Shown here one piece after another: positions 17,927 through 37,244 of a DNA stretch of 64,000 nt. How positions within the stretch are numbered: the stretch's first letter is position 1; each line of letters begins with the position of its first letter. This DNA is from Mantamonas sphyraenae STR306 (lineage: Eukaryota > Protista > CRuMs), in the NCBI GenBank assembly GCA_026936335.1, contig JAPMXV010000075.1, forward strand, positions 62,001-126,000. The letters run 5' to 3'. Both the position numbers and the translations under genes were made by a program. Under the pieces are notes generated by a model, which was not told where the DNA came from, ran no database searches, and saw only the letters and a program-made list of their open reading frames with translations.

Positions 17927-17970
17927 GTTCGGGTGCGCGCGTTGGGGCAGGAGAAGAAGATTCGGCAAGG

Positions 17971-19144
17971 ATGAGCACGCTGGGATCGGCCAATGAAGAA
18001 GCCATGCGACTGTTTCGCATCTACCGGACGACCACCCAGATGCTGGTTGACCGTGGGTACTCAGTGACCAAGGACGACAAGAGCATGGACTTTGACAAGT
18101 TTACAGAGACGTTTGGCGAGTCACCGTCGTAGGTTGCACGCGAGAGAGGGTTGAATGGAGGGGTGGATGGGTGGAGGGGTGGAAAGGGGGGTGGGTGGGT
18201 GGAGAGAGAGAGGGAGAGGCGGGAGCAGGAGAGAGGAGCGGACGCTCACACGCTCCCACACGCGCACACACGTACAGGCGAGACGCAATGGTGCGGTTCA
18301 ACACGCGCAGGGACGATCTGAGTGAAAAGATCTTTGTGTTTTACTGCGAAAGCCTGAAAGTGCGCGTGAGCGACGTGAAAGGGTGGGTTTTGTGTGAGGA
18401 GGCAAGGCGGGAGGAAGTGGTGCTCGAGAGGCTGACACACAAAAGGGGAATGGGGGGCCAACCACACACACACACATGCACCGATGGGAATGGATGGTGG
18501 GGAGGACAGGTATTGGGAGAGGATGAAGGATGCAGGGGTGACGAGGGCGGTGCTTGTGTACAGGAGCGGCATCACGTCGATGGCCAAGCAGGGGATTCAG
18601 CGTTTGGCGCCGGATTTCCACATTGAGATCTTTCAGGAGAGCGAACTGCTGGTGAACATTACAGAGCATGTGCTTGTGCCGAAGCATGTGGTGCTGGACA
18701 ACGACACAAAGGCGTTGCTGCTGAAGAAGTACAAGATCAAGCAGACTCAGCTGCCGCGCATTCAGAACACGGACCCTGTGGCGCGGTACTTTGGGGTGAG
18801 TGTGGAGAGAGATGTGGCGAGGGAAGGAGAGAGGAGGAGGCAGAGAGGCATGGGAAGTGGGGTTGGATGGGGTGAGGGAATGGTGGACAGGGAAGGAAGG
18901 GAAGGAGAAAGGGGGAGAGCTGAAGAGTGGTTTGGGGGGTGTGGGGGAAAGAACATGTATGGCTGACACAGTGTGGGTGTATGGGGCCATTGTGTGTGTA
19001 TGTGGGAACGTATGCTGGTTGACTGTGCTTGTGTGTGTGTGTGCACGACAGCTGCGACCTGGACAGGTGGTCAAGATCATCCGACCGAGCGAGACGGCAG
19101 GGCGGTATGTGACGTACCGATTTGTGTGTCCGTCGCGTGCGTAA
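17971..19144 (+). CDS. RPB5: RNA polymerases I/II/III shared subunit RPB5, copy 1
   Basis: RLFRIYRTTTQMLVDRGY; FQESELLVNITEHVLVPKH; QLPRIQNTDPVARYFG; GQVVKIIRPSETAGRYVTYR. Three introns. Confidence 0.97.
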
Positions 19145-19294
19145 GGAGAGCCACAGAGGGGAAGAATGGAGACGAACGAGAGAGAGCGTGTGGTGTGGTA
19201 GGGTGGTGGGAGTGGGAGTGGAGGAATGGAAACTGCAGGACGGCAGAACGCACCTGCTTCAGCACCAACAACCAAACCCACCAAATCACAATCG

Positions 19295-19909
19295 ATGTTT
19301 GGGCGTGTGAGCAAGGGTAGCTCGAGGAGCGGAGCAGTGATTACGCGTGCGCTGAATGGGACGCTGGGCCAAAACAGCCGCCACGCAAGCAGCAGCAGCA
19401 GCGTGTCGGGTGTGCCAGAGCCGCCGATTGCAACGTACGATCCCGCGGTCGACTCCAGGGGAGCACAGGAGCTTGGCGTACGTGTGGCGTGGCTGTGAGG
19501 AGGGGGGATGTGAGAATGTGTGTGCAGCCCGTCGGTGCGCAGGAGACTTGGAGCCCCGTGGAGCCGTCACGGCCCCTCAGAGGGTCGGCCGGCCCACGGC
19601 AGCGCGCTCGGCAAAATTCCGCGGGCGGGCTGTGCAGGAACACAAAGACACGGGGGAGGGATAGGATGGCATGGAACTGACAGGAGGACATGTCACACAC
19701 ACACACAGCTGCACGAGGAAGTCGAGGTGCTGGGCATTTGGGGTCTGGACAAGGACAACACCATCAAGGCGGGCGAATCGCTCGTCACTCTCGTGGGTGC
19801 ACTTGCATTCATGGGCTTTGCCGCCGCTATGGTCAAACCGGCCAAGAAGCCGACAGCTGACCGCGTCCTGCCGTACAACAATGCAGCCAAAGCACTGGGC
19901 AAGGAATGA
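19295..19909 (+). CDS. Putative mitochondrial complex I accessory subunit, NDUFB8-like
   Basis: Presequence MFGRVSKGSSRSGAVITRAL. Last exon LHEEVEVLGIW, one TM, then PAKKPTADRVLPYNNAAKALG resembles NDUFB8 C-termini. Middle exon(s) unresolved. Confidence 0.5.
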
Positions 19910-19950
19910 AACAACTGGCATTCACTCTTTGGCACTCGCACATGGCCTCT

Positions 19951-21582
19951 TTAGGCCAGGAACTGACCCAGGGCAGCCTGGATGGTCTTGTGAGCCGATT
20001 GCAGGGCGGTGGAATCCGTAGAGGCCGGGTAGTACATGTTGGAGCAGTGAGCACCCTGAGGGATGATCACCAGCTGCAGGTTCTTGTTGGCAGGCGGTGT
20101 GGTGATGCTCAAGGCATGCCACGGGTCGATGAGTCCGTTCACCATCACCGTGTTGCTGCTGCCCAGCATCTTGCCTCCGTAGTAGTCGTTGGTAAAGTCC
20201 ACGTGCGGCATGCGGAAGGCGTCGCCATACACATCTGCACACATCTGGTTCCAATACTCAATGGGGAACTGGTCGCCAAAGGGCTGGCTGGAAGAGTCGG
20301 CGTCGCTGGATTGGAAGAAGCCAAACTCGCGGCAGGATTGCCAGATCCACAGACGCATGGCTGTGGCTCCCGGGTTGGCCGTCGACGTGTTCTTCAACTG
20401 GTTCACCTGCGATGCATACGACACATCCAAGCAAGGCTGGCCCTGCAGCAGCAACTCGTTCACTGCAGCCAGCTGGGCAACTGCATCGTCACCTGCACCC
20501 ATGATGTCGCACAGGGCGGAGATGGTGATGTTGGACGAAGGGATGTCCCGGTTGTACTGCACCACACCCATGAACAGACCGGCAATGGCCGACATGAACG
20601 TGGCACGCGATGCACTGTCGTCCTTGAGGGCATCACACGTCTTGAACTGGTTCTGCAGCTGAGTGCGCCCTGCATCCGTGCCATACAGGCTCGTGATCTG
20701 GTTCACACCCATGGCAATCTTGGGCACACATGATTGTCCACCCATTGTCGTCAGCGATGCCTGCACCACCTGCAGGTACGCACTAAAGTCGTTGACGGCT
20801 TGCACCGGAGCAGACGACGAAATAGCACCCACCACCTTGTGCGGGTACTTGAGACGGTACCACGCAGACAGTGCTCCCGGGTAGCTTCCACCAAAGCACA
20901 CCCACTTGTTCGCATCCGTCATCCCATACTTGCTCTGCAGGAACGATTGCAGCGTATCCAGATCAGCCAACGCCTGCTGGCTGCTCAGGAAGCGCAGGTT
21001 GGGTGTGTCCACTCCACTGGCAGGGAACGATTCACCGTAGAAACGATGCTCAATGTCCACCAGCAGGGCGTTGTACTGCTTGGCGTAGTAGGCAATGGCG
21101 CCAACCTGCAGGAAGGCACCGTTCTCAGGGCCCTCGCCTCCGATCATGAGGAACACAGGGCCGTTCTCCTTGTCCCAGTACTGGTCATTGACATAGTACT
21201 TCTGCTGGAACGTGGCGTTGTTCTCGCTGTCGTAGTGGTCCAGCGTCTGCGTAAAGAACTGCTTCGGCAGGTCGTCTTTGCGTGGACACCCGTCAGTTTC
21301 CGGGCCCCTGCACGCTCTGCACCCCTCTCCACGCCCTCCTCCTCCCACTTACCCAGTCCCTCTGTCTTCAGAGAGCTCACCATCATGTCTGTGTGCGTTT
21401 ATCCGACTGTGTCAGAGCCTGGGTGCCGCGAGAGCCGTTTGCAAGTGGGCATCATCTTCCTCTCTCTCTCCCGTTCCTCCCCCCCACGCTGAACACTCAC
21501 CGTAATGCGTGCGGGGAAACGGCAGTGCAAGCGCAGCCTGGACACACACGAGTGCAATGAGCACACTCACAGCAATCTTCAT
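19951..21582 (-). CDS. Serine peptidase family S28 (PRSS16/Pro-X carboxypeptidase-like), copy 1
   Basis: Signal peptide MKIAVSVLIALVCVQAALA; FTQTLDHYD, GPVFLMIGGEG, EHRFYGES, GGSYPG (catalytic Ser), NGLIDPWH, GAHC. Confidence 0.95.
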
Positions 21583-21710
21583 TGGTGTGGGTGAAAATGT
21601 GTTTGTCTTGGACGCCGGTGAGCACCCGTTCACAATCACATCTCCAATGGTGACCCATTGACCAGCAACGAGGGGGACGCCCCCCAGAAACCGACCGTTC
21701 ACCAACGATG

Positions 21711-21914
21711 AAACCGTTGAGCCAAGAACGCGTTCCACACTTTCATTGTTCAGTTACAGGCTGTTCGGTTCAAATTGAAACTTTGTGTGAGGCAGCGCAA
21801 AGGGTTTGGTCTCGGTGACGGAAAAGGAAAACTTACATCATTACAACCCTGTGCTAGGTGGTATACACCCAATGTTTGGTTGGTTGGTTGGTTGACGGTT
21901 CTGGTGCCCCGTCC
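21711..21914 (-). ncRNA. Candidate Fanzor omegaRNA scaffold region
   Basis: Non-coding, relatively AT-rich ~200 nt directly 3' of the Fanzor stop, ending where host-duplication homology begins. Ends can pair (GAACCGU 21901-21895 with ACGGUUU 21717-21711). Positional inference from Fanzor/TnpB biology. Confidence 0.4.
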
Positions 21915-24900
21915 TCAGCCTGCACTCGAATTCGCCTCCAGGTTCTGTGCCTCGCCGTCCACGTTCTCTGGCAGACCAATCTTGCTTCGGAACGCCCTGC
22001 CGATCTGACTCCGTTGCCAAACCTTGGTCATGCACCATATGGTGTGACCGCGAAGGGCAGCGTACACCTTGTTCGCGATTGCTTGTGCGCTGGCAAAGTC
22101 CCGGTTCCGGTGCATTTTGCATCGCGTACAGTACTTGACACGCGCGGTGCGGGCATTGCCGTGCTTGCTCTCGTGCACACTGCCACATGTGGGACATCTC
22201 AGCGTCGTATTGCACTCGTTCACACGCACAACAATCATGTTGTGCTTGGCCAGCTCCTCCAGTTTCTTCACTCCACCACGGCCGCCCTTGAATCCGTCAC
22301 CGATGCACAGCAGTGTGATGCGTCGCAGTTGCCCCTTCTCCAACTGCATCTTCTCGGTCGCACGCACCTGAGCCAGCCAGTGTTCCCTCATCTTTCGAAT
22401 CCTGTTCTTCTGTTCCCGTCGATGATGCGTCTTTCTGTCTCCACTTTGGCTGTCCTCCTCCTGTTCCTTCTGGATGACAGCTGATGAAGCTTCTTCAGCC
22501 GTCAAGGCCCTGCACTGATGGCGCAGCGTGCGTCCCACCCGTGCCTCCGAATGCCTCTCGGCAAACAGTCCTGCTCTTTTCACGCGCAGCTCCTGCATCC
22601 GTTCACGCACCCTCCTTGAAAGTGTTGCATTGTCTTTCTTGAGACCCACCTTGCGTTCCATGGCTCCGAGTGATGGGGGCGAAAACCGCCACGCGGTGGC
22701 AAACTGGAGCAGGTAGCCATCCTGCACGGTTTCTTTCAGCGGGATGCATAGAGCTGACGGTGCGTTCGCAATGCCGGGATCTGCTCCAAGGAATTGTAAG
22801 CGCTGATTGGCGCCTTGACTGAGAGCGAGGAGGCGGGAAAAGGACGAAACCACGCCATGAGGTCGTCTTGAGTGTTCCAGGTTCCGTGGACACAATCCCA
22901 AGGCGATGAGCTTTCCAGCAGAGTGCGGAAGCCATTTGTGGAGTAGTGCGTGCACAGCCTTGGTCTGCGCTCCCACATCCCCATCTCCATCTGCGAGTTC
23001 CCGCACAGGTTGCAACTGATGCTCGTGCGAGGCAACAAGCATGCCCACCTGGCAGAGCCTGATAGCCACAGCTGCCACGCGCTCAAGAAGGCGCCTGGTG
23101 TTCTGCTGCTCCTCGGTGTGGGCGTCTGAGTCTCGTCCTCTCTTCCCCTTGGCTGCCACCTTGCCAACCGCTGAGTAGTTGTATCTGGCGATGCTATGGG
23201 TGACAAACGGCGCAGAAAGCGCAGGCCTGGGCTCTGGTGCATCTTCCAGCAGCGTGTAATCCCCCCGCAGAAACTGCAGTAGATCGGCATCGTCGATTCT
23301 TTCTGTGTCCTCGTATGACGTTGCAGTGGGGTTGCGGAGCAGGTTGATGCAGGCACGAAGCGTTGGAAACAAGGAGAGGCGCTGGTGCGGCACAAGAAGG
23401 TGCTCCAGCATGAAAAGTCGTCGCTGATCGGCCCCGGATGGAATCGTCCAGTGACGCACGTTTGCCATATGTACGTTGGAGAAGAGACGTACAGAGAGGA
23501 AGCCATCGTTGAAGAAGGGTGTTTTGGCCACACGAGCCGCGTGTGTGGGTGAAAGGATGTCATACACGTTGAAGGAGGAAAAAAGCAGTGCATCGGCATA
23601 AGCACCAAGCTCCTCGTCAGCTATGTGCGCACCTTCCTCGTACGTGACCACGCGCGCTGATTTGTTTACACATGTCTGTGCACATACATGCATGGCCTGA
23701 ATCGATGTGGAGGCGAACAGCGAGCGCCTGCTGCTGCCTCCACCGCCTCCGCTGCTGCTGCTGGTGCTGCTGCTGCTGCTCTGAACCACTTCCTCCTGAT
23801 TCGTATTCATCATATGCCACGCCAGCGATGCACGCATGGCATGAACGTGTGCCTGGTTGTCAGCCCGACGGGCACCCCGTACAAACTCGTGCACACCACA
23901 GTGACACGCTGTCGTACTGTCCCAACACTCCTGCGGCGGAGGTGCATCGGAACAGCCGCCGGGTAGTGATGTGGCAGCACCACAGAGGACAGACCAGGCT
24001 AACAACTTGCTGTCCAAGTCCACCTCCTTGTCCCCGCAAATGCGCAGCAGATTTCTCGCCAATGTGGTGGTTGCCCACCGCCCAAAAATCAACTCCCGTT
24101 CGGCCGCCAGCTGGATCTCGAAAGAGTGTTGGTCCCCATAGAGCTTTCGGGTTGAGTTGCACTCCTTGGCAAGCTCGTAGAAGCACCGCAGTGCAACGAG
24201 TGGTGACTTGGTTTCCAGGCTGCGCAGCGAGCTGAACTGCTTGAGAGACACGTTCCCTACGTCCAGTAGAACCTTCTCAACAGCCCGTTTGCATGCTCGG
24301 TGCATTGTGGTGTCTGTAGGGCCGTCGTCGCCGTCGTCGTCGGGGTTTGCGTGGCGTGTCAGAAACCCCACCACGTCTTTGCGCTCTAGCTGCGGGGAAG
24401 CAGCCACAACAAGGTCAGCCAGGTTGTCGTTGGCCTGTGTGGTCAACATTACTCTCCAGCTGGTGAGGATGTGAGCAGCAGCCCGATTGCACAGAGTTGA
24501 AAACACACCTGCTGGCAGACCTTCCAGATGCACGGGCGCTCTCGCCGCCGTCTCGTCCAAACCGTCCACGTACTCAGCCCGAATGCATCCGTCTTGTTGC
24601 CTTTGCAGTATGAGATCTGTGTTTGCAGCGATCAAGCCGTTTGTTGTGGAGCCCGCGGCGGAAACAACGGACACCTCGTCGGGTGGCCTCAAATACAGAC
24701 GGTCATTCCTGATGACAAGGCTGCGTGACAACATACCTTCCACCGTTTTGTCTGGTTCAACCTGGGCGCACTGTAGCAGGTCTCGCTGGATGGCAACCAC
24801 AACACCAAACACGTTCTGGATTTGGATCAGCTGGCTGACGTCCTTCTCGGTCACCAGCGCTTTGTTGCGGAGAGTGGACATAGATCCCAGTTCCACAATG

Positions 24901-27566
24901 CACGAGGAGGAGGCAAGGTACTCTGCATGCGTCTCGTCGAGGTTTGGCGTGGTGAGTCCAAAAAAGACAGACCACTCTGCGTCGTCTGCCTGCTCGTTGT
25001 CGGGCAGGATGGTGTCAATGACGTCGTCTAAGGACAGTACGCCCCCGTCTCCGTCTCCGTCGCCTTGGTCTTGGTCTTGTTCGTGCACACGGAAGACTCG
25101 GTCAATGGCGGCAGATGTGTTCTCTTGCCACTCCTGTGACTCGTCTACAGAAGGGGGTGTCGCTCCAAGGATAGATGCTAGATCCTTGGTTGCACCAACA
25201 AACACGTCCTTGGACATGTCAACACCCTCTTCCTCCAGAGCAGCGACAAGCCGGCTTTGTTTGAGCAGTGCCTGGCGGAGATCTGGGTGAAGCACACCGC
25301 GAAGCGATGCAATGGACTTGCGAATCCTATCCTTGGGTAGGTACTGTGTGCAAAGACTCGTCCATCTCTTCGCGTTGACCATGTTCGAGTACAACATCGA
25401 CGGGCACGTGTAGTTGGCGGCCGTGCCGCTAGCCTGCGCCTGCGCCGTGCCGCTAGCCTGCGCCTGCGCCGTGCCAGTATCCTGGGCCGTGCCGCCAGCC
25501 TGCGCCGTGCCAGTATGCTGCTCCTGCGCCGTGCCAGTATGCTGCTCCTGCGCCGTGCCGTTCGCCTGCGCCGCAGCAACCAACCCCTCCATCCCAATGG
25601 CCCGTGTGTCCACAGACACCTTGTACTGGTGCCTATCTTTGTGATCGATGTCTGCAAAGTGGACGTTGCGCTTGTCGTTGGCGCGCTGGCACTCCCAGCG
25701 CGCCATGGTGGATTCACGCAGATCATGGAGAACGTGCGTGCTCAGCGTGTCACTGCCTGTAAGTGCCCCCGCTCGCCGACAAACCTCACCAGCGGGAAGG
25801 ACATGAGCTGTTGACATGTCTGAGTCATACTCGACCGCAAACTGCCGTACAAACGCATTCAAGAGCGACATGACCCCTCCGTCGTCATCAAAGTGCACTG
25901 CGCCTAGGACGTTGGCCTCTGGCAAAGTCTCCTCAACAACCACGTCCTTCACGTCCCCATCAAACACACGCCCCCACGCATGGAGGGACGTGAGCCGCTC
26001 AATAGCGTCGTCGTCGAACCCAAGGACCTGGAGGTGGAGCTTGACCCAGCGAAGGTAGTGGAGAGCATGCTGTTGCAGGAGAAGCATGTGCTCGGACGCC
26101 GGCTGCTTACCAGACGTGCCACGCAGGAGGGTGGCGACCGACAAGTCATTGTGGACAATGCTGGCGTAAACGTGCGTGAGAAGATCGCCATCCTCAAGCA
26201 GATCTCGCAGTGACTCCGTGTCCAAGCTCAGCAGATTGCGACTTGGTGGTCGTACTGTGGCTTGGATGTCACTGGAGAGCAGCATTGCAGCGGCCAAGCT
26301 CATCAGTTGGTTGTCCATGTCTTGCACAAGTGCTGTCCCGAGAGTAGGATGCAGGAGGTAAACCGGCTGTGTGGTCTGGTTGAATCCCCAATCGCTATCG
26401 TGGAGAGTGATGATAAAGGCGATGTCCTCCTCCTTGTCGTACACTCGCATGACCGCGTCTTTGACCTGATCTGCAAGCACCGGTTGATTCTGAAGATCGG
26501 CCAGCTCGTTCCCGAACTCGTACTCCTGGTGCTCCATGGACAAATGTTTCGCAGCGTGGTACATGGCAATGTGGGCCTGTCCCGTGAGACATAGTCTATG
26601 TCCTTGGCCAGCGCCGTGCGCCGAGAACGGGGCTGCGTCTTCTTTCCGGGAAACATCACGGCGGAGTCGCTGCATAGCCTCTACCTGCACCATGGTTCCC
26701 TCAATGCGCCGAAGGTGTGTCCCATAGCTGATGGATTGTGCTTCCTCGTCTGCCATCTCGGGCTTCACATCGCAGCAGAGGACGTACCGCAATCGGTTGT
26801 CATTCTTGGCGTCCGCAATGTCAATGCGCAGCTCGGTGTTGGCCTTCTCAACCTCTAAGCACCGCTGTACCAACTCGCGCACCTCGTTCTTGTTCAGGTC
26901 TGTGGTACGACAAGCCTCCTCGAGCACCGTGTAGCAGACGGCGGAGACGTCGACCAAAACAATCACCCATTCCACCGGCGTCCCCCCAGCGCCAGGCGTC
27001 AGCATCTCCTCCTGGAAACCAATGTCAAGCATGGACATGATATCCCTCTGTCGTTTCGCCTTCCCGCTCCCTCCTTGCCGTCCCGTATGAAGCTCAACGT
27101 GCTGCTTTTTGGCGGAGATTTTTGAGCTGTTGGAAATTGCATCCCGCACTTGCTTTTTGTCCTGCCATACCGGATTACCAAGGTCATCGCCATCTACATC
27201 CACCTGTTCCCCACCATCCACCCGTTCCGTATCCATTCCATCGTCAGTCGACGCGTCGATAGCCTCCTGAAACATGTGGACGCTCCCAGCACTTCGGCGG
27301 CTCCTCCTTCGCCCGACTGCAACCTCCTCCTGGCCCTTTTCGACCACCGGGTCCTTTTCACGCAGTACACACGCACTGCAGAACCTATTCACCAGATGCA
27401 CATCGTTGTTGCATCCACAGGAATCGCATTTGTGCCGCCGTGACCGCTTTCGGTGCGGAAGCGTCCAGTGCAACTGCAGAGTCGCCTCATCTTCGTCGTT
27501 GTCGACGATGATGTCGCTGTGGCCACGTTTTCGTGTACGGTTGTATTCTATGTTGCGCTCACTCAT
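21915..27566 (-). CDS. Giant Fanzor1/TnpB-family RNA-guided nuclease with long N-terminal extension (putative FEN1/XPG-like PIN domain)
   Basis: Intronless 1,883-aa ORF from GCCACC-ATG. RuvC-I FLGADPGI (D1596), LCIGDG, RuvC-II VVRVNECNTT (E1784), CPTC..CTRC, RuvC-III RNRDFASAQAI (D1823). Confidence 0.88.
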   Translation of the reverse strand: MSERNIEYNRTRKRGHSDIIVDNDEDEATLQLHWTLPHRKRSRRHKCDSCGCNNDVHLVNRFCSACVLREKDPVVEKGQEEVAVGRRRSRRSAGSVHMFQEAIDASTDDGMDTERVDGGEQVDVDGDDLGNPVWQDKKQVRDAISNSSKISAKKQHVELHTGRQGGSGKAKRQRDIMSMLDIGFQEEMLTPGAGGTPVEWVIVLVDVSAVCYTVLEEACRTTDLNKNEVRELVQRCLEVEKANTELRIDIADAKNDNRLRYVLCCDVKPEMADEEAQSISYGTHLRRIEGTMVQVEAMQRLRRDVSRKEDAAPFSAHGAGQGHRLCLTGQAHIAMYHAAKHLSMEHQEYEFGNELADLQNQPVLADQVKDAVMRVYDKEEDIAFIITLHDSDWGFNQTTQPVYLLHPTLGTALVQDMDNQLMSLAAAMLLSSDIQATVRPPSRNLLSLDTESLRDLLEDGDLLTHVYASIVHNDLSVATLLRGTSGKQPASEHMLLLQQHALHYLRWVKLHLQVLGFDDDAIERLTSLHAWGRVFDGDVKDVVVEETLPEANVLGAVHFDDDGGVMSLLNAFVRQFAVEYDSDMSTAHVLPAGEVCRRAGALTGSDTLSTHVLHDLRESTMARWECQRANDKRNVHFADIDHKDRHQYKVSVDTRAIGMEGLVAAAQANGTAQEQHTGTAQEQHTGTAQAGGTAQDTGTAQAQASGTAQAQASGTAANYTCPSMLYSNMVNAKRWTSLCTQYLPKDRIRKSIASLRGVLHPDLRQALLKQSRLVAALEEEGVDMSKDVFVGATKDLASILGATPPSVDESQEWQENTSAAIDRVFRVHEQDQDQGDGDGDGGVLSLDDVIDTILPDNEQADDAEWSVFFGLTTPNLDETHAEYLASSSCIVELGSMSTLRNKALVTEKDVSQLIQIQNVFGVVVAIQRDLLQCAQVEPDKTVEGMLSRSLVIRNDRLYLRPPDEVSVVSAAGSTTNGLIAANTDLILQRQQDGCIRAEYVDGLDETAARAPVHLEGLPAGVFSTLCNRAAAHILTSWRVMLTTQANDNLADLVVAASPQLERKDVVGFLTRHANPDDDGDDGPTDTTMHRACKRAVEKVLLDVGNVSLKQFSSLRSLETKSPLVALRCFYELAKECNSTRKLYGDQHSFEIQLAAERELIFGRWATTTLARNLLRICGDKEVDLDSKLLAWSVLCGAATSLPGGCSDAPPPQECWDSTTACHCGVHEFVRGARRADNQAHVHAMRASLAWHMMNTNQEEVVQSSSSSTSSSSGGGGGSSRRSLFASTSIQAMHVCAQTCVNKSARVVTYEEGAHIADEELGAYADALLFSSFNVYDILSPTHAARVAKTPFFNDGFLSVRLFSNVHMANVRHWTIPSGADQRRLFMLEHLLVPHQRLSLFPTLRACINLLRNPTATSYEDTERIDDADLLQFLRGDYTLLEDAPEPRPALSAPFVTHSIARYNYSAVGKVAAKGKRGRDSDAHTEEQQNTRRLLERVAAVAIRLCQVGMLVASHEHQLQPVRELADGDGDVGAQTKAVHALLHKWLPHSAGKLIALGLCPRNLEHSRRPHGVVSSFSRLLALSQGANQRLQFLGADPGIANAPSALCIPLKETVQDGYLLQFATAWRFSPPSLGAMERKVGLKKDNATLSRRVRERMQELRVKRAGLFAERHSEARVGRTLRHQCRALTAEEASSAVIQKEQEEDSQSGDRKTHHRREQKNRIRKMREHWLAQVRATEKMQLEKGQLRRITLLCIGDGFKGGRGGVKKLEELAKHNMIVVRVNECNTTLRCPTCGSVHESKHGNARTARVKYCTRCKMHRNRDFASAQAIANKVYAALRGHTIWCMTKVWQRSQIGRAFRSKIGLPENVDGEAQNLEANSSAG
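25420..25570 (-). repeat. In-frame 18-24-nt tandem repeat (GTAQ-x) inside the Fanzor ORF
   Basis: Units encode GTAQEQHT x2, GTAQAG, GTAQDT, GTAQAQAS x2. Recurring gccgtgcc on the + strand. Confidence 0.9.
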
Positions 27567-27579
27567 GGTGGCTTTTTCT

Positions 27580-27673
27580 CTTGGGCATGGTGGCGCACGA
27601 TCCACACACTGTGGACTGCCACCATGCCCAAGGCAGGTGACCTAAATCATGTGTGAAGGACGCGTAGCGTCCT
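27580..27673. promoter_or_regulatory. Two hairpins upstream of the Fanzor start
   Basis: Perfect 15-bp inverted repeat CTTGGGCATGGTGGC (27580-27594) / GCCACCATGCCCAAG (27618-27632) with inner TCCACA/TGTGGA. Second stem AGGACGC-gta-GCGTCCT (27657-27673). Function unknown. Confidence 0.6.
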
Positions 27674-27762
27674 ATATGCTGCTCATTGGCTCATACACCA
27701 CGAGAACACCTATCAGAACACACGCGGAGACGTTGCCGACACTGAATCAACTTGACCCGAAT

Positions 27763-29332
27763 TCACTGTAATTCATCGCTGCTGTTGCTGCTGCTGCTGC
27801 TGCTCTCCTTCCGCGGGTACACATCCTCCTTGGGTTCCCAGTTCTTTGCAAAGGTCTCTGCGACAAGGAGGGGAAACACAAGCGTGGCCTCGGCACACAC
27901 CTTGACGGGTTCCGCGTAGATGCTGATCTTCCCCCAGGTGACAGCCTCGGACGGAGCAGCGCCGCTGTCGCTACCGTCAAACTCGTGTGCAGTGTTGATG
28001 TACACGGCCCAGTCAGCGCCGTTGCGCATGAGGTTTGCATTGCAGATGTGGTGCTTGACAATGCCGCCGCCGAGGATGATCATGCCACTGTGGGCAGCCT
28101 TGACGGCAATGTCGTTGATGCGACGGATGTCTTGGGCAATGTCCACCACCAGTCCCTCGTTCTGGTAGCTCTGGAAGTAGATCATGTCTCCGATGGAGCC
28201 GTCGGTGATCGCCGGGCAAAACACAGGGATGTTGTTCTTGTGGGCCCAGTAGTAGACGCTGTCCTCGTTGTCAATCTCCTTTCCCAGACGATCGATGATC
28301 TTGGAGGGTGACCACACGACGCCGTCCTCCTGCTGTTCCTTGAGCATGGCATTGAGGATGGGCATCATAAACTCCTCAAACTTGACGTAGTTGTCATTGG
28401 GCACAATCAGGTTGCCCAGGCGGTTGAGTCCCTTGAGACGCATGTCCTTGCCATTCAGGTTGAATGCGCCGTGGTAGTGCGGCGTCATGCACTTCATGAA
28501 ATCCTCCTCGATCCCACCCCCCGTCGTCACAATCGCATCCACCATCTTGTGTTCCACCAGGTACCGAATCACCTCGCGCAGACCGCTGCTGATCATGTTG
28601 GACGTGTATCCCAGAAAGATGGTCGCCCGTGTCTTTTTGCGCAGGTCCGGATCGACGATGGAATCGCGGTCCGTCACCTCTTCGTCGCTCAGGCGCCATT
28701 TGATCTGCGTGCACGGGTCCTGTGTCAATCAATGTCTTTGTGTGCAATCCATGGACCCTGGGGACCCTTTGTGCATGCTTTCCGGCAGCGTACCATGTCA
28801 TTCACTCGGTCCATGGCCTTGCCCAAATGCGTGGACTGGAAGCCCGTTGAGATGTAGTGCTTCATGATCTGCTCGTAGTCCACGCCCTGGTTAAAGTCGT
28901 ACCCAAACACGGTGGGGCTGTTCCAATGAGGCGTGTGTCAGCGTGTGTGGGCAGGTGAGTGGTGTGTGTGTGGAAGACCTGTCACACACGCAAGGGTGCG
29001 CCCAGTTCGGCGAAACACCGCACTCCGCGAGAGCAGCCAGCCAGCCCACAGAGGTACGAGTGGACGTGTGCACGTGGCATACACACAACCACAGGACCAT
29101 GCCACACATAAAGATGCACACGAGCAACGTACTGGTCGTCCGGCATGGCCACACTCTGCACAAGCACAGCCTCAGTGGCCTTTTCAGGGCGATTGTCCGC
29201 AAAGAGTTCCTTGCTACTGACCCCTTTCGACTCTGTGCTTCCCTGTTCCTGTTCCTGTTCCTGCTTTTGCTCCTGCTCCTGCTCCTGTTCCTGTTCAGTG
29301 GATGGTGTTGTTTCCTTGTCGGTGGTACTCAT
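27763..29332 (-). CDS. DHPS: Deoxyhypusine synthase
   Basis: [89 protein letters not shown]. Multi-exon. Confidence 0.97.
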
Positions 29333-32300: not shown

Positions 32301-32513
32301 GTGCACGGTGACGAATCGTTCTACGGTGTGCACACAGCCCACCTGAGCAAGAGCCCAAGTGTGGACTATGGTCACCGAATGCGACAGGCAGCTGCAAGGG
32401 AGGCACAGAATGGGAATCGCTTGCTCAAGGCGCGGCGGTCCATTGTTGGTGAACGGTCGTTTTCGGGGGCGTCCCCCTCGTTGCTGGTCAATGGGTCACC
32501 ATTGGACATGTGA
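29388..32513 (+). CDS. Long coiled-coil hypothetical protein
   Basis: Spliced ORFs with WWNIQESVRSALLAL and repeated L..KAD/KVD heptad motifs. Its last ~70 nt are included in the duplicated segment. Confidence 0.7.
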
Positions 32514-32566
32514 TTGTGAACGGGTGCTCACCGGCGTCCAAGACAAACACATTTTCACCCACACCA

Positions 32567-34204
32567 ATGAAGATTGCTGTGAGTGTGCTCATTGCACTCG
32601 TGTGTGTCCAGGCTGTGCTTGCACTGCCGTTTCCCCGCACGCATTACGGTGAGTGTTCAGCGTGTGGGGGCGGAACGGGAGAGAGAGAGGAAGATGATGC
32701 CCACTTGCAAACGGCTCTCGCGGCACCCAGGCTCTGACACAGTCGGATAAACGCACACAGACATGATGGTGAGCTCTCTGAAGACAGAGGGACTGGGTAA
32801 GTGGGAGGAGGAGGGCGTGGAGAGGGGTGCAGAGCGTGCAGGGGCCCGGAAACTGACGGGTGTCCACGCAAAGACGACCTGCCGAAGCAGTTCTTTACGC
32901 AGACGCTGGACCACTACGACAGCGAGAACAACGCCACGTTCCAGCAGAAGTACTATGTCAATGACCAGTACTGGGACAAGGAGAACGGCCCTGTGTTCCT
33001 CATGATCGGAGGCGAGGGTCCTGAGAACGGGAAGTTCATCCAGGTCGGCATGATCAACCTCTACGCACAGAAGTACAACGCCCTGCTGGTGGACATTGAG
33101 CATCGTTTCTACGGTGAATCGTTCCCTGCCAGTGGAGTGGACACACCCAACCTGCGCTTCCTGAGCAGCCAGCAGGCGTTGGCTGATCTGGATACGCTGC
33201 AATCGTTCCTGCAGAGCAAGTATGGGATGACGGATGCGAACAAGTGGGTGTGCTTTGGTGGGAGCTACCCGGGAGCACTGTCTGCGTGGTACCGTCTCAA
33301 GTACCCGCACAAGGTGGTGGGTGCTATTTCGTCGTCTGCTCCGGTGCAAGCCGTCAACGACTTTAGTGCGTACCTGCAGGTGGTGCAGGCATCGCTGACG
33401 ACAATGGGTGGACAAGCATGTGTGCCCAAGATTGCCATGGGTGTGAACCAGATCACGAGCCTGTATGGCACGGATGCAGGGCGCACTCAGCTGCAGAGCC
33501 AGTTCAAGACGTGTGATGCCCTCAAGGACGACAGTGCATCGCGTGCCACGTTCATGTCGGCCATTGCCGGTCTGTTCATGGGTGTGGTGCAGTACAACAG
33601 GGATAACCGCCCCGGAAGCAATGTGACCGTGTCGATGCTGTGCGACATCATGGGTGCGGGTGACGACGCAGTTGCCCAGCTGGCTGCAGTGAACGAGTTG
33701 CTGCTGCAGGGTCAGCCTTGCTTGGATGTGTCGTATGCATCGCAGGTGAACCAGTTGCAGAACACGTCGACGGCCAACCCGGGAGCCACAGCCATGCGTC
33801 TGTGGATCTGGCAATCCTGCCGCGAGTTTGGCTTCTTCCAATCCAGCGACGCCGACTCGTCCAGCCAGCCCTTTGGCGACCAGTTCCCCATTGAGTATTG
33901 GAACCAGATGTGTGCAGATGTGTATGGCGACGCCTTCCGCATGCCGCACGTGGACTTTACCAACGACTACTACGGAGGCAAGATGCTGGGCAGCAGCAAC
34001 ACGGTGATGGTGAACGGACTCATCGACCCGTGGCATGCCTTGAGCATCACCACACCGCCTGCCAACAAGAACCTGCAGCTGGTGGTGATCCCTGAGGGTG
34101 CACACTGCTCCAACATGTACCCGCCGACGGATCACGACTCGCCAGCGCTGCAGGCGGCTCACAAGACCATCGAGACGGCCATTGGACAGTTCATTGGTGC
34201 TTGA
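32567..34204 (+). CDS. Serine peptidase family S28, copy 2
   Basis: Same motifs as copy 1 and near-identical except three divergent patches. Confidence 0.95.
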
Positions 34205-34296
34205 TCGTGCTTGGTGGGGGGGTCCCAAGGAATGAAAAGTGGACAGCGTGCTGAAAGTAGGTGGATATTACATACATGGGCACCCAACTGGGAGAC

Positions 34297-35559
34297 CTAT
34301 GTTGGTGGTGATGGCCAGAATTTCGGGTTGTGAGGGTGATTGTCCCAATCGAATGTGGTTGATGGACAGCGGAGAGCATGAGGATACGCCTCTCCCATCA
34401 GGTCGTGCTCCTTCACAGGCCCGTTCAAATGGATGCCAAAGCACTGAAACTGCCATTGCATGTCAAATTGTGACCGCAGGTGCGAATGGCAATTGAGCCA
34501 GGGGAACTTTGTCGTTTCTGGGATGAAGCGCACAAACTCGGAACTTCGGTTTCCCATTGGGCCGACCAAACGATCAAGTTCAGCACTGAAGCAATTTGAG
34601 TAGGCTTGGTTGACCTTCAGGTATCCCTCGCGATCCTGTGACAAGTACCAGCTTGGGAAAGGAATCTCCAGAAACGGCCCACACGTGTTGTTGTAGGCAG
34701 ACACCCCTGCGACTGATTTCTCTGCACCCAACATCACCAACAGGGCTTCCATCCACGCCCCGTTGTCGATTTGGACAGTGTACCGCTTTCGCCAGCGCAG
34801 AAAGTTGGCAAAGTACGCTTCGATCCATCCGCCGTCACGTCGGCGTGCGTACAGATCCGCATTCTCATTGATTCCCCAGTGTGGGATTGGCGCGTGGTCT
34901 GTCATTGTGAATGGTCTTCCGTCATACAGCTTCTCCAGCTGGAAGCTCAACCACAGCGGGTTGAGGGCGTAGTCGACCCCCGTGAAGAACACGACATCGT
35001 ATTCCTGCAGCAAAGGCACCATGCCGAACGCCCATGCCCAAACAGGTGCCTCGCTATACCACCTGTGAGAGCTCTTGAGTGCAGCAGCGACATCGTCCGG
35101 AAGAGAAACATCCTTTTCGTGTAGCCTGGGGTCGACGAACCTTGAGATCAACAAGTCGTAGCCGTGCAAATGTGCGTAGCACGCACGCCAGAAGTTCTCC
35201 TTTGCATATGTGGTGAAGGTGTCATTGGTCCCTGTTGCGAACAGCAGCACTTTCAACGGGCTGCTCTCGCGTTTGTGGTTGCGAACGATGGAAGCCATGG
35301 CCGCCTCGCTGCCATTGCTCGCCACTCTGGCTTCCTCCACATACTGTGCTTCGACACCGGTAAGAGCTATCCAGTTTATGTGCGTGTCTTCCTTGGGTTT
35401 TGGTTTGGGTTTGATCGTTGGCTGCAAGGGCCCTGTGGAAGGATTTGCATCGGTTGCAATTTGTCCCTCGGTGTCCTTTTCTGTGGCCGGCACGAGCACC
35501 AGTATTAGGCTGATCAGGGTAACCAGCACAAGCAAAACCACGATCGCCAGTCGGCGCAT
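34297..35559 (-). CDS. Intronless type II membrane glycosyltransferase-like protein (GT34/GMA12-MNN10-like)
   Basis: N-terminal TM anchor MRRLAIVVLLVLVTLISLILVLV, a stem, then YAKENFWRACYAHLHGYDL and LQEYDVVFFTGVDYAL as in GT34-like enzymes. Confidence 0.55.
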   Translation of the reverse strand: MRRLAIVVLLVLVTLISLILVLVPATEKDTEGQIATDANPSTGPLQPTIKPKPKPKEDTHINWIALTGVEAQYVEEARVASNGSEAAMASIVRNHKRESSPLKVLLFATGTNDTFTTYAKENFWRACYAHLHGYDLLISRFVDPRLHEKDVSLPDDVAAALKSSHRWYSEAPVWAWAFGMVPLLQEYDVVFFTGVDYALNPLWLSFQLEKLYDGRPFTMTDHAPIPHWGINENADLYARRRDGGWIEAYFANFLRWRKRYTVQIDNGAWMEALLVMLGAEKSVAGVSAYNNTCGPFLEIPFPSWYLSQDREGYLKVNQAYSNCFSAELDRLVGPMGNRSSEFVRFIPETTKFPWLNCHSHLRSQFDMQWQFQCFGIHLNGPVKEHDLMGEAYPHALRCPSTTFDWDNHPHNPKFWPSPPT

Positions 35560-35561
35560 GG

Positions 35562-35831
35562 TCAACGACTTGCCTTGGGCACATGTGCGCGATGTGTGGC
35601 AGAACTTGTCCCGTGTTCAGGGACGCCAATTGTCTCAAGAAGGAACTTGCAATGCTCCTGTGCTCCCCTGGAGTCGACCGCGGGATCGTACGTTGCAATC
35701 GGCGGCTCTGGCACACCCGACACGCTGCTGCTGCTGCTTGCGTGGCGGCTGTTTTGGCCCAGCGTCCCATTCAGCGCACGCGTAATCACTGCTCCGCTCC
35801 TCGAGCTACCCTTGCTCACACGCCCAAACAT
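35562..35831 (-). pseudogene. Truncated/chimeric 5' copy of the NDUFB8-like gene
   Basis: Matches 19295-19472 (MFGRVSKG...SRGAQE), then runs into unrelated sequence and stops at 35562. Confidence 0.7.
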
Positions 35832-35982
35832 CGATTGTGATTGGTGGGTTTGGTTGGTTGTGCTGAAGCAGAAGTGCGTCCTGCCGTCCTGCGGTTTCCA
35901 TTCCTCCACTCCCACTCCCACCACCCTACCACACCACACGCTCTCTCTCTTTCGTCTCCATTCTTCCCCTCTGTGGCTCTCC

Positions 35983-37147
35983 TTACGCACGCGACGGACA
36001 CACAAATCGGTACGTCACATACCGCCCTGCCGTCTCGCTCGGTCGGATGATCTTGACCACCTGTCCAGGTCGCAGCTGTCGTGCACACACACACACAAGC
36101 ACAGTCAACCAGCATACGTTCCCACATACACACACAATGGCCCCATACACCCACACTGTGTCAGCCATACATGTCCCCCCCACCCCCCCCAAACCACTCT
36201 CCAGCTCTCCCCCTTTCTCCTTCCCTTCCTTCCCTGTCCACCATTCCCTCACCCCATCCAACCCCACTCCCCATGCCTCTCTGCCTCCTCCTCCCTCCTT
36301 CCCTCGCCACATCTCTCTCCACACTCACCCCAAAGTACCGCGCCACAGGGTCCGTGTTCTGAATGCGCGGCAGCTGAGTCTGCTTGATCTTGTACTTCTT
36401 CAGCAGCAACGCCTTTGTGTCGTTGTCCAGCACCACATGCTTCGGCACAAGCACATGCTCTGTAATGTTCACCAGCAGTTCGCTCTCCTGAAAGATCTCA
36501 ATGTGGAAATCCGGCGCCAAACGCTGAATCCCCTGCTTGGCCATCGACGTGATGCCGCTCCTGTACACAAGCACCGCCCTCGTCACCCCTGCATCCTTCA
36601 TCCTCTCCCAATACCTGTCCTCCCCACCATCCATTCCCATCGGTGCATGTGTGTGGTTGGCCCCCCATTCCCCTCTTGTGTGTCAGCCTCTCGAGCACCA
36701 CTTCCTCCCGCCTTGCCTCCTCACACAAAACCCACCCTTTCACGTCGCTCACGCGCACTTTCAGGCTTTCGCAGTAAAACACAAAGATCTTTTCACTCAG
36801 ATCGTCCCTGCGCGTGTTGAACCGCACCATTGCGTCTCGCCTGTACGTGTGTGCGCGTGTGGGAGTGTGTGAGCGTCCGCTCCTCTCTCCTGTTCCCGCC
36901 TCTCCCTCTCTCTCCACCCACCCAACCCCCCCTGTCCACCCCTCCACCCATCCACCCATCCATCCAACCCTCTCTCGCGTGCAACCTACGACGGTGACTC
37001 GCCAAACGTCTCTGTAAACTTGTCAAAGTCCATGCTTTTGTCGTCCTTGGTCACTGAGTACCCACGGTCAACCAGCATCTGGGTGGTCGTCCGGTAGATG
37101 CGAAACAGTCGCATGGCTTCTTCATTGGCCGATCCCAGCGTGCTCAT
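35983..37147 (-). CDS. RPB5: RPB5, copy 2
   Basis: Coding sequence essentially identical to copy 1; introns differ by small indels and substitutions. Confidence 0.97.
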
Positions 37148-37244
37148 CCTTGCCGAATCTTCTTCTCCTGCCCCAACGCGCGCAGAGCACACGAGCGCCC
37201 GTGGAACCAAAGCCAAAGCAAACACTCCGAGCACACACTCAATC

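Follow-up and report, generated by a model that had tools for sequence, protein, structure and literature searches.

Fanzors, RNA-guided DNA nucleases related to Cas12, have so far been seen as compact proteins with one nuclease, and what they do for eukaryotic transposons is a matter of inference. A stretch of 64,000 nucleotides from the marine protist Mantamonas sphyraenae STR306 (contig JAPMXV010000075.1, positions 62,001–126,000; here the window, numbered from its first letter) raises the question of whether such a protein can carry a second nuclease, and what that nuclease would do for the transposon encoding it. An earlier note on this DNA had quoted PIN-type 5′-nuclease motifs in one polypeptide with a Fanzor; all of them are present in a single open reading frame (ORF) at 27566–21915 on the minus strand, 1,883 amino acids long counted from the ATG, a start codon common to most copies of the element. 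This one frame couples a FEN-superfamily 5′ nuclease to a Fanzor.

A single frame in 14 copies

The genome searched comprised the primary contigs of the assembly (25,061,354 bases in 78 contigs; published as 25.06 Mb, 78 contigs and 59.19% GC, PMC10492846; the window has about 59% G+C). The nuclease region of the window matches 14 places in it, each within a frame of 1,728–1,977 codons that reaches the RuvC part, so that homologues with both domains, which the earlier note had proposed looking for, do exist. A fusion made by assembly is ruled out by these 14 copies and by the agreement of Illumina-type contigs from three public sequencing runs, which show zero insertions or deletions relative to the window across the ORF. 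Read-contig depth rises approximately ten- to twentyfold over the final 600 bases of the element, as expected given its many near-identical right ends.

In a Pfam search of the whole ORF, only the C-terminal TnpB zinc finger scored above cut-off (PF07282, residues 1772–1830). At the opposite end, the basic N-terminus and the C4 motif that follows are kept in most copies; the copy designated L047 lacks them, and a shift has put them out of frame entirely in L037 and in part in L043. Two copies carry 5′ frameshifts ahead of the nuclease. The zinc finger previously read as CDSC-x10-CSAC exists as a C4 motif with a different set of ligands: C50 of CDSC is not conserved, and the pattern shared among copies is C-x4/5-C-x10-C-x2-C (C47, C52, C63 and C66). 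The layout of the element and its protein is given in Table 1.

Table 1. Layout of the element, its protein and the adjoining host exon in the window
Feature	Positions	Strand	Basis or remark
Whole transposon, 6,016 bp including TA at both ends, without transposase gene	21755..27770	-	Copy-to-copy similarity stops at these positions
Left terminal inverted repeat, ~24 bp, begins TA|CAG	27747..27770	-	Gives the upstream host gene its stop codon
ORF: FEN-like 5′ nuclease, middle region, Fanzor	21915..27566	-	Frame also open in 13 other copies
Basic N-terminus resembling a nuclear localization signal, and C4 zinc-finger-like motif (C47, C52, C63, C66)	27369..27566	-	Putative function
FEN-superfamily (FEN-like PIN) 5′ nuclease, residues ~191–520	26007..26996	-	Predicted fold, profile alignment, invariant Asp
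Residues ~520–885, moderately conserved	24912..26006	-	Contains a copy-specific Thr/Ala/Gln repeat (25396–25597)
WED/REC lobe of Fanzor, residues ~886–1362, with insertions	23481..24911	-	Structural alignment
RuvC and TNB zinc finger	21918..22800	-	PF07282 above cut-off; catalytic residues
Conserved non-coding tail, 160 nt, candidate ωRNA scaffold	21755..21914	-	Stop codon to right end; conserved across copies
Right terminal inverted repeat, ends CTG|TA	21755..21778	-	Predicted 3′ end of the ωRNA scaffold
Host deoxyhypusine synthase, last exon (outside the element)	27763..28728	-	PF01916, E 3e-116; frame enters the left repeat

Fold and active site of the 5′ nuclease domain

The AlphaFold model of residues 175–540, built on the 14 copies, has a mean predicted local distance difference test score (pLDDT) of 78 and a predicted template modelling score of 0.75. 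It contains the α/β core of FEN/PIN proteins and a C-terminal helical subdomain, with a poorly modelled helical arch (pLDDT below 50 at model residues 96–154). The best 50 rows of a Foldseek search against the PDB all belong to the FEN superfamily (T4 RNase H, T5 D15, XRN1/2, EXO1, XPG and FEN1), with no single row at E < 1e-3; against viral models, eleven matches have E < 1e-3, and the named ones are XRN, FEN-1 and 5′–3′ exonucleases. A second structural aligner returned T4 RNase H at Z 11.2–12.1 (the best, 12.1, with 236 residues aligned at a root-mean-square deviation (rmsd) of 4.8), XRN, T5 FEN and EXO1 at Z 9–10, and FEN1 and XPG at Z 7–9; the XRN proteins in particular score Z 9.5–9.9, with a template modelling score of 0.53 in the Atlas. 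Profile–profile alignment with the T4 RNase H family scored 39.1, whereas the best of 60 column-shuffled controls reached 21.6. The PIN-like 5′-nuclease fold predicted in the earlier note is thus borne out, and its label 'FEN1/XPG-like' stands at the level of the superfamily, T4 RNase H, T5 FEN, XRN and EXO1 being the nearer matches and FEN1 and XPG lying lower. The class holds at this superfamily level, which does not fix the subfamily or the substrate.

The same relationship extends to the active site. Hhalign pairs D206, D266, D366, D390 and D392 with D19, D71, D132, D155 and D157 of T4 RNase H, and a separate alignment to Escherichia coli Pol I pairs D366, D390 and D392 with D115, D138 and D140. 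A sixth residue, D433 in the motif LLSSD, which had been missed before, is paired with T4 D200 by spacing and motif only, lying 41 residues past D392 where D200 lies 43 past D157. The four aspartates named at the outset (D206, D266, D390 and D392, with codons at 26951, 26771, 26399 and 26393) are invariant in the 14 copies, as are D366 and D433, at 20–70% identity and in a region where just 36 of 366 positions are invariant overall. Among the 57 Asp and Glu residues between 175 and 540, 8 are invariant, and 6 of the 8 are the predicted metal ligands.

Positions 330 and 332, once taken for a changed E-x-E motif, lie in TGQAH in the helical-arch region and vary among copies (Q/E/K/N and H/Q/L, respectively); the equivalent segment is LADQVK, which holds the invariant D366. 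The suggestion of reduced or lost activity rested on this misaligned motif and is left unsupported. D366 appears from the alignments to be the helix carboxylate, and the nuclease site looks active. The position equivalent to T4 E130 (L364 in the window copy) is Leu, Cys or Thr among copies; E354, acidic (E/D) in 14 of 14 and modelled directly after the preceding strand, may replace that carboxylate. A degenerate active site was considered and rejected, given six invariant carboxylates and strong purifying selection.

Sequence searches returned no family for the domain. None of the 14 copies matched the Pfam families XPG_N, XPG_I, XRN_N or 5_3_exonuc_N, and genome scans with XRN_N and XPG_I hit no element copy. 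A hidden Markov model search of the PDB found no family (its dystroglycan rows are chance matches), a word search of 5.8 billion proteins and a search of viral and metagenome contigs found no relative, and a profile search of 1.84 billion representatives gave 0 matches. Feature matches in the ESM Atlas were all below 0.9 though they included PIN-like DDX60 and Asteroid/XPG_N clusters.

Selection and possible recombination among copies

Within residues 195–445 the subfamilies are 67, 47–52, 38 and 20% identical to the window copy. Ratios of non-synonymous to synonymous divergence between subfamilies are 0.10–0.16 for the nuclease (195–445), 0.16–0.20 for RuvC and 0.2–0.36 for the middle region, values that are rough, with synonymous sites near saturation. 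The nuclease is under purifying selection as strong as that on the RuvC part, and both active sites are retained together in 13 of the 14 copies. Five copies at five loci are 96–100% identical, so movement has been recent.

From about codon 1720 onwards the subfamilies are 87–94% identical in DNA, with fourfold sites 70–93% identical compared with 25–45% upstream. Across otherwise diverged subfamilies, L046 excepted, the final ~650 bases of the element (21755–22400) are homogenised. The window copy itself consists of an L037-type left end joined to an L035-type body. The homogenised right end and the mixed window copy point to recombination among copies or to long RNA-level constraint.

About 20 further giant TnpB-family frames occur in the genome without a match to this nuclease profile. 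A second TnpB-family set of 1,780–1,861 codons (G000 C8, C10, C25, C29, C30, C31, C45 and C58; PF07282) is likewise unmatched by it.

The Fanzor half

The Fanzor half is expanded and occupies residues ~886–1883. A second model, of residues 715–1590 (pLDDT 65), gave no match in Foldseek. VIA-align, applied to residues ~886–1362, returned the Guillardia theta Fanzor (9cer) as the best of 48,161 chains, at a middling Z of 7.7 with 272 residues aligned and an rmsd of 6.0, the next row being at 5.0; eight other Cas12, TnpB and Fanzor rows, including Cas12k, Cas12g, Fanzor2, Cas12f and TnpB, align over the same range. The structural comparison favours Fanzor1 over Fanzor2 (Z 7.7 versus 4.7).

The RuvC residues are D1596, a GD at 1756–1757 at the canonical Glu place, a rearranged E1784, and an RD at 1822–1823 (D1823), and the TNB zinc finger has CxxC pairs at 1791/1794 and 1813/1816. 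Six residues separate E1784 from C1791, the position that defines a rearranged RuvC-II Glu (PMC13565253, PMC10530073), and the Fanzor motif D-x(125,275)-[TS][TS]-xx-C4-x(5,50)-RD (PMC3627910) is found with spacers of 190 and 5 residues. These residues are intact in 13 of 14 copies, L047 being frameshifted within RuvC. No relative of the RuvC part was retrieved from outside the genome by searches that were length-limited or pattern-based, from which absence does not follow.

The element, its insertion site and its transposase

The element is bounded by imperfect inverted repeats of ~24 bp reading TA|CAG inward, and Logan contigs show loose ends with different flanks at 21754–21755. A pattern for the ends matched 31 genome sites, almost every one facing a partner; its reversed control matched 0. 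Thirteen copies are bounded by the two repeats and lie in unrelated flanks. Of these, 12 have TA on either side and one has AA at the right; the flanks are A-rich at −3, −2, +1 and +5 (8–9 of 13 each). Two copies, L035 (7,143 bp) and L036 (6,839 bp), have an IS630-family transposase gene (NF033545, E 3e-11; PF13358, E 3e-12) that lies within the left end and precedes the large ORF on the same strand. The L035 gene probably contains a 98-nt intron, and it shows a one-base gap and a short C-terminus; that of L036 has a 325-base deletion, and the other 11 of the 13 bounded copies are without one. These elements belong to the IS630/Tc1-mariner type, the window copy being a non-autonomous member; the copying without a transposase envisaged in the earlier note finds no support in these ends and genes.

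Among the primary contigs, 17 intact-looking DDE_3 genes were found, all of other families. An intact IS630 gene beside L044 was considered as the cognate and rejected: it lies outside the ends, belongs to another multicopy element and is 28–36% identical to the transposase encoded in cis. That neighbour (L044:7669–9700; G000 C44:17468–19499) is an IS630/Tc1 element with an intact 353-residue transposase and at least nine copies 91–100% identical, and starts exactly at the left end of the Fanzor element. Elsewhere (G000 C2:227110–233653, C11:271587–278184, C57:104843–111403, C44:200440–207743 and C44:318368–325670), TnpB-family frames of 1,536–1,638 codons have an intact-looking DDE_3 gene 6–7 kb upstream in the same orientation, and these pairs are probably autonomous transposase-plus-giant-Fanzor elements of another family.

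The insertion point is in the last codons of the deoxyhypusine synthase gene, and the stop codon of that gene is now provided by the left repeat. At the two junctions (27763–27770 and 21745–21756), the flanks taken together continue the reading frame for three codons before a stop, so that the insertion hardly changes the host protein. Directly upstream of the ATG, a perfect 15-bp inverted repeat at 27580–27632 is particular to the window copy.

Candidate ωRNA and guide

The non-coding tail lies where Fanzor ωRNAs are found (PMC10432273). A single small hairpin within the tail carries a two-sided change in 3 of 9 sequences. By analogy, the guide would be the flank at 21754–21735; this putative 20-nt guide has no second match within the window, the best being 11 of 15, so a target 10.7 kb away is not supported when the element end is placed here.

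Relation to known systems

Mariner and IS630 elements that contain a Fanzor have been described before (PMC3627910, PMC10691335, PMC13565253); those of Mariner type include elements flanked by TA duplications, some encoding a transposase and some not (PMC3627910). The Fanzor1 elements PGv-1, PUl-1 and PUl-4 resemble the present family in being TA-bounded inverted-repeat Tc1/mariner elements, in the C-terminal motif and in that only some copies carry a transposase gene, placed ahead of the Fanzor (PMC3627910); here, in contrast, the Fanzor is 1,883 amino acids long and fused to a 5′ nuclease, whereas the extra GIY-YIG nuclease of PGv-1 is a separate gene. IS630-associated TnpB of the DDE-6 branch, found also in Klosneuvirinae, shares the IS630 transposase, symmetric ends and solo copies, which are mobilised in trans there and presumably here; no more than 250 bp separate its 3′ end from the end of the element, the distance here being 160 nt. 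Those proteins are of ordinary size, and a fused second nuclease is not reported there (PMC10691335).

GtFz1 (9cer) and SpuFz1 (PMC10432273) are alike in the WED/REC lobe, to which GtFz1 supplies the best match, in the Glu rearranged to before the zinc finger and in a conserved tail reaching the right end. Sequence similarity to them is detectable only in the TNB finger, and the Fanzor part here is ~1,000 residues long compared with ~610 in GtFz, with ~880 extra N-terminal residues. The nuclease domain shares its fold (Z 8–12) with T4 RNase H, T5 D15 FEN, Pol I, EXO1, XRN1/2, FEN1 and XPG, and with T4 RNase H the order and spacing of the carboxylates (D206/D266/D366/D390/D392/D433 versus D19/D71/D132/D155/D157/D200), but is ~10% identical to enzymes of the superfamily, has the E130 equivalent replaced or displaced, and is fused to an RNA-guided nuclease.

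Engineered fusions of Cas proteins to exonucleases exist, and the present protein is a natural counterpart. No Fanzor or TnpB fused to a FEN-superfamily nuclease, and no Fanzor of such size, was found in the literature searched, most subscription journals lying outside it; the earlier note, too, knew of no characterised example. Protein, profile, viral and metagenome searches found no relatives outside this genome. The literature search gave no mention of a Fanzor in CRuMs, a lineage to which the fusion extends the family.

Proposed function and alternatives

The retention of the fusion across 14 diverged copies suggests that the element can steer repair of its own RNA-guided break. In the sequence of events that we propose, the element would be cut and pasted by an IS630/Tc1 transposase, encoded in cis in the two damaged copies and presumably supplied in trans to the rest. 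By homology with known Fanzors, the protein would bind an ωRNA from the right end together with ~15–20 nt of flank, and would cut the empty site or allele at a target-adjacent motif, predicted to end in TA and perhaps A-rich ahead of it, plus that flank. The tethered FEN-superfamily domain would then resect the 5′ ends or trim 5′ flaps at the break. Ends so processed would favour homologous repair from the filled copy in place of end-joining, and the element would be restored or spread at the locus. Excision by the transposase, cutting of the empty allele by the Fanzor and resection by the fused nuclease in favour of homing make up a reading to which we give about an even chance. The resection for homing suggested by the earlier note is thereby retained as the favoured mechanism, separated from its transposase-free part. 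It agrees with the action of the best structural matches (T4 RNase H, T5 FEN and EXO1) on DNA ends and flaps, and restorative homing is the accepted role of TnpB-type systems (PMC13565253).

Several results weigh against this proposal. The primary contigs hold no intact gene of the cognate transposase family, and the TA duplication is deduced from TA at both ends, a single-TA empty site not having been recovered where this was tested (at L044, the other flank being single-copy). The tail has a folding energy no better than that of shuffled sequences (z +0.9), and no RNA run was identified among the public runs on record. The carboxylate equivalent to T4 E130 is replaced by Leu, Cys or Thr unless E354 stands in for it. 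The fold does not separate DNA from RNA substrates, with XRN scoring nearly as high as T4 RNase H, an enzyme that itself also removes RNA from hybrids.

These last points bear on a possible though less likely reading, in which the nuclease works on the system's own RNA, trimming the transcript 5′→3′ to the ωRNA or removing the guide from the R-loop after cutting. XRN1 and XRN2 are among the top structural matches, hybrid RNA is a substrate of T4 RNase H, and the ωRNA would form the last part of a transcript 6 kb long; however, the XRN match is limited to the nuclease core, the host has XRN genes of its own in the genome scan, and known Fanzors need no domain of this kind to acquire their guides (PMC10432273, PMC10530073). 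It is improbable that the nuclease is instead a host-manipulating cargo, damping silencing or expression in the manner of FEN-fold viral shutoff RNases and doing no service to the cut. FEN-fold viral nucleases, shutoff proteins included, are among its structural neighbours, but the shutoff matches are weaker than those to T4, T5 and XRN proteins, and 13 of 14 copies, though deeply diverged, have kept the domain in one frame with an intact RuvC.

Slightly less credible again is transposase-free copying to new sites by RNA-guided cutting, resection and host recombination. The scarcity of transposase genes (none in 11 of 13 bounded copies, damage in both cis genes, no intact cognate found) would suit it, as would the five copies that are nonetheless 96–100% identical and the last ~650 nt homogenised across subfamilies. 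Set against these are the precise TA|CAG inverted ends on both sides in unrelated flanks, the mark that a DDE transposase leaves behind, and the need of homing for flank homology, which leaves new sites unexplained; moreover, the L035 gene is one base and a short C-terminus away from an open transposase frame, and the search for an intact cognate covered primary contigs only. In a broader version that we regard as doubtful, about on a par with host manipulation, a self-contained cut-and-resect protein would copy elements through host recombination without a transposase of their own, the homogenised right ends being its trace, and other giant Fanzor families may show similar accretion of N-terminal enzymes. 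Least credible is a catalytically dead or weak domain that binds only junctions or ends, as might be suspected from the lack of a sequence-level match to any FEN family, the poorly modelled arch and the one of seven canonical carboxylates out of its usual place, because the six aspartates are invariant at 20–70% identity where only 36 of 366 positions are.

The fusion allows the homing model to be tested directly in DDE transposons, for which it has been doubted that a Fanzor brings any benefit (PMC13565253): a single point mutation would uncouple cutting from the processing of ends.

Other features of the element and locus

A solo right end is present at G000 C69:55133–55156, and contigs leave the element internally at 21949 and 22619; together these suggest truncated or 'ghost' copies. 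Three similar pairs of inverted ends ~6.7 kb apart (G000 C4:296220–302971, C43:588270–595020 and C44:41353–48037) enclose no match to the 5′ nuclease, TNB or DDE_3. Outside the element, the window contains a 3.7-kb inverted duplication (17934–21689 and 32460–37184, 93–99% identical) with two peptidase S28 genes; one of its inner ends lies ~45–65 bases from the right end of the element.

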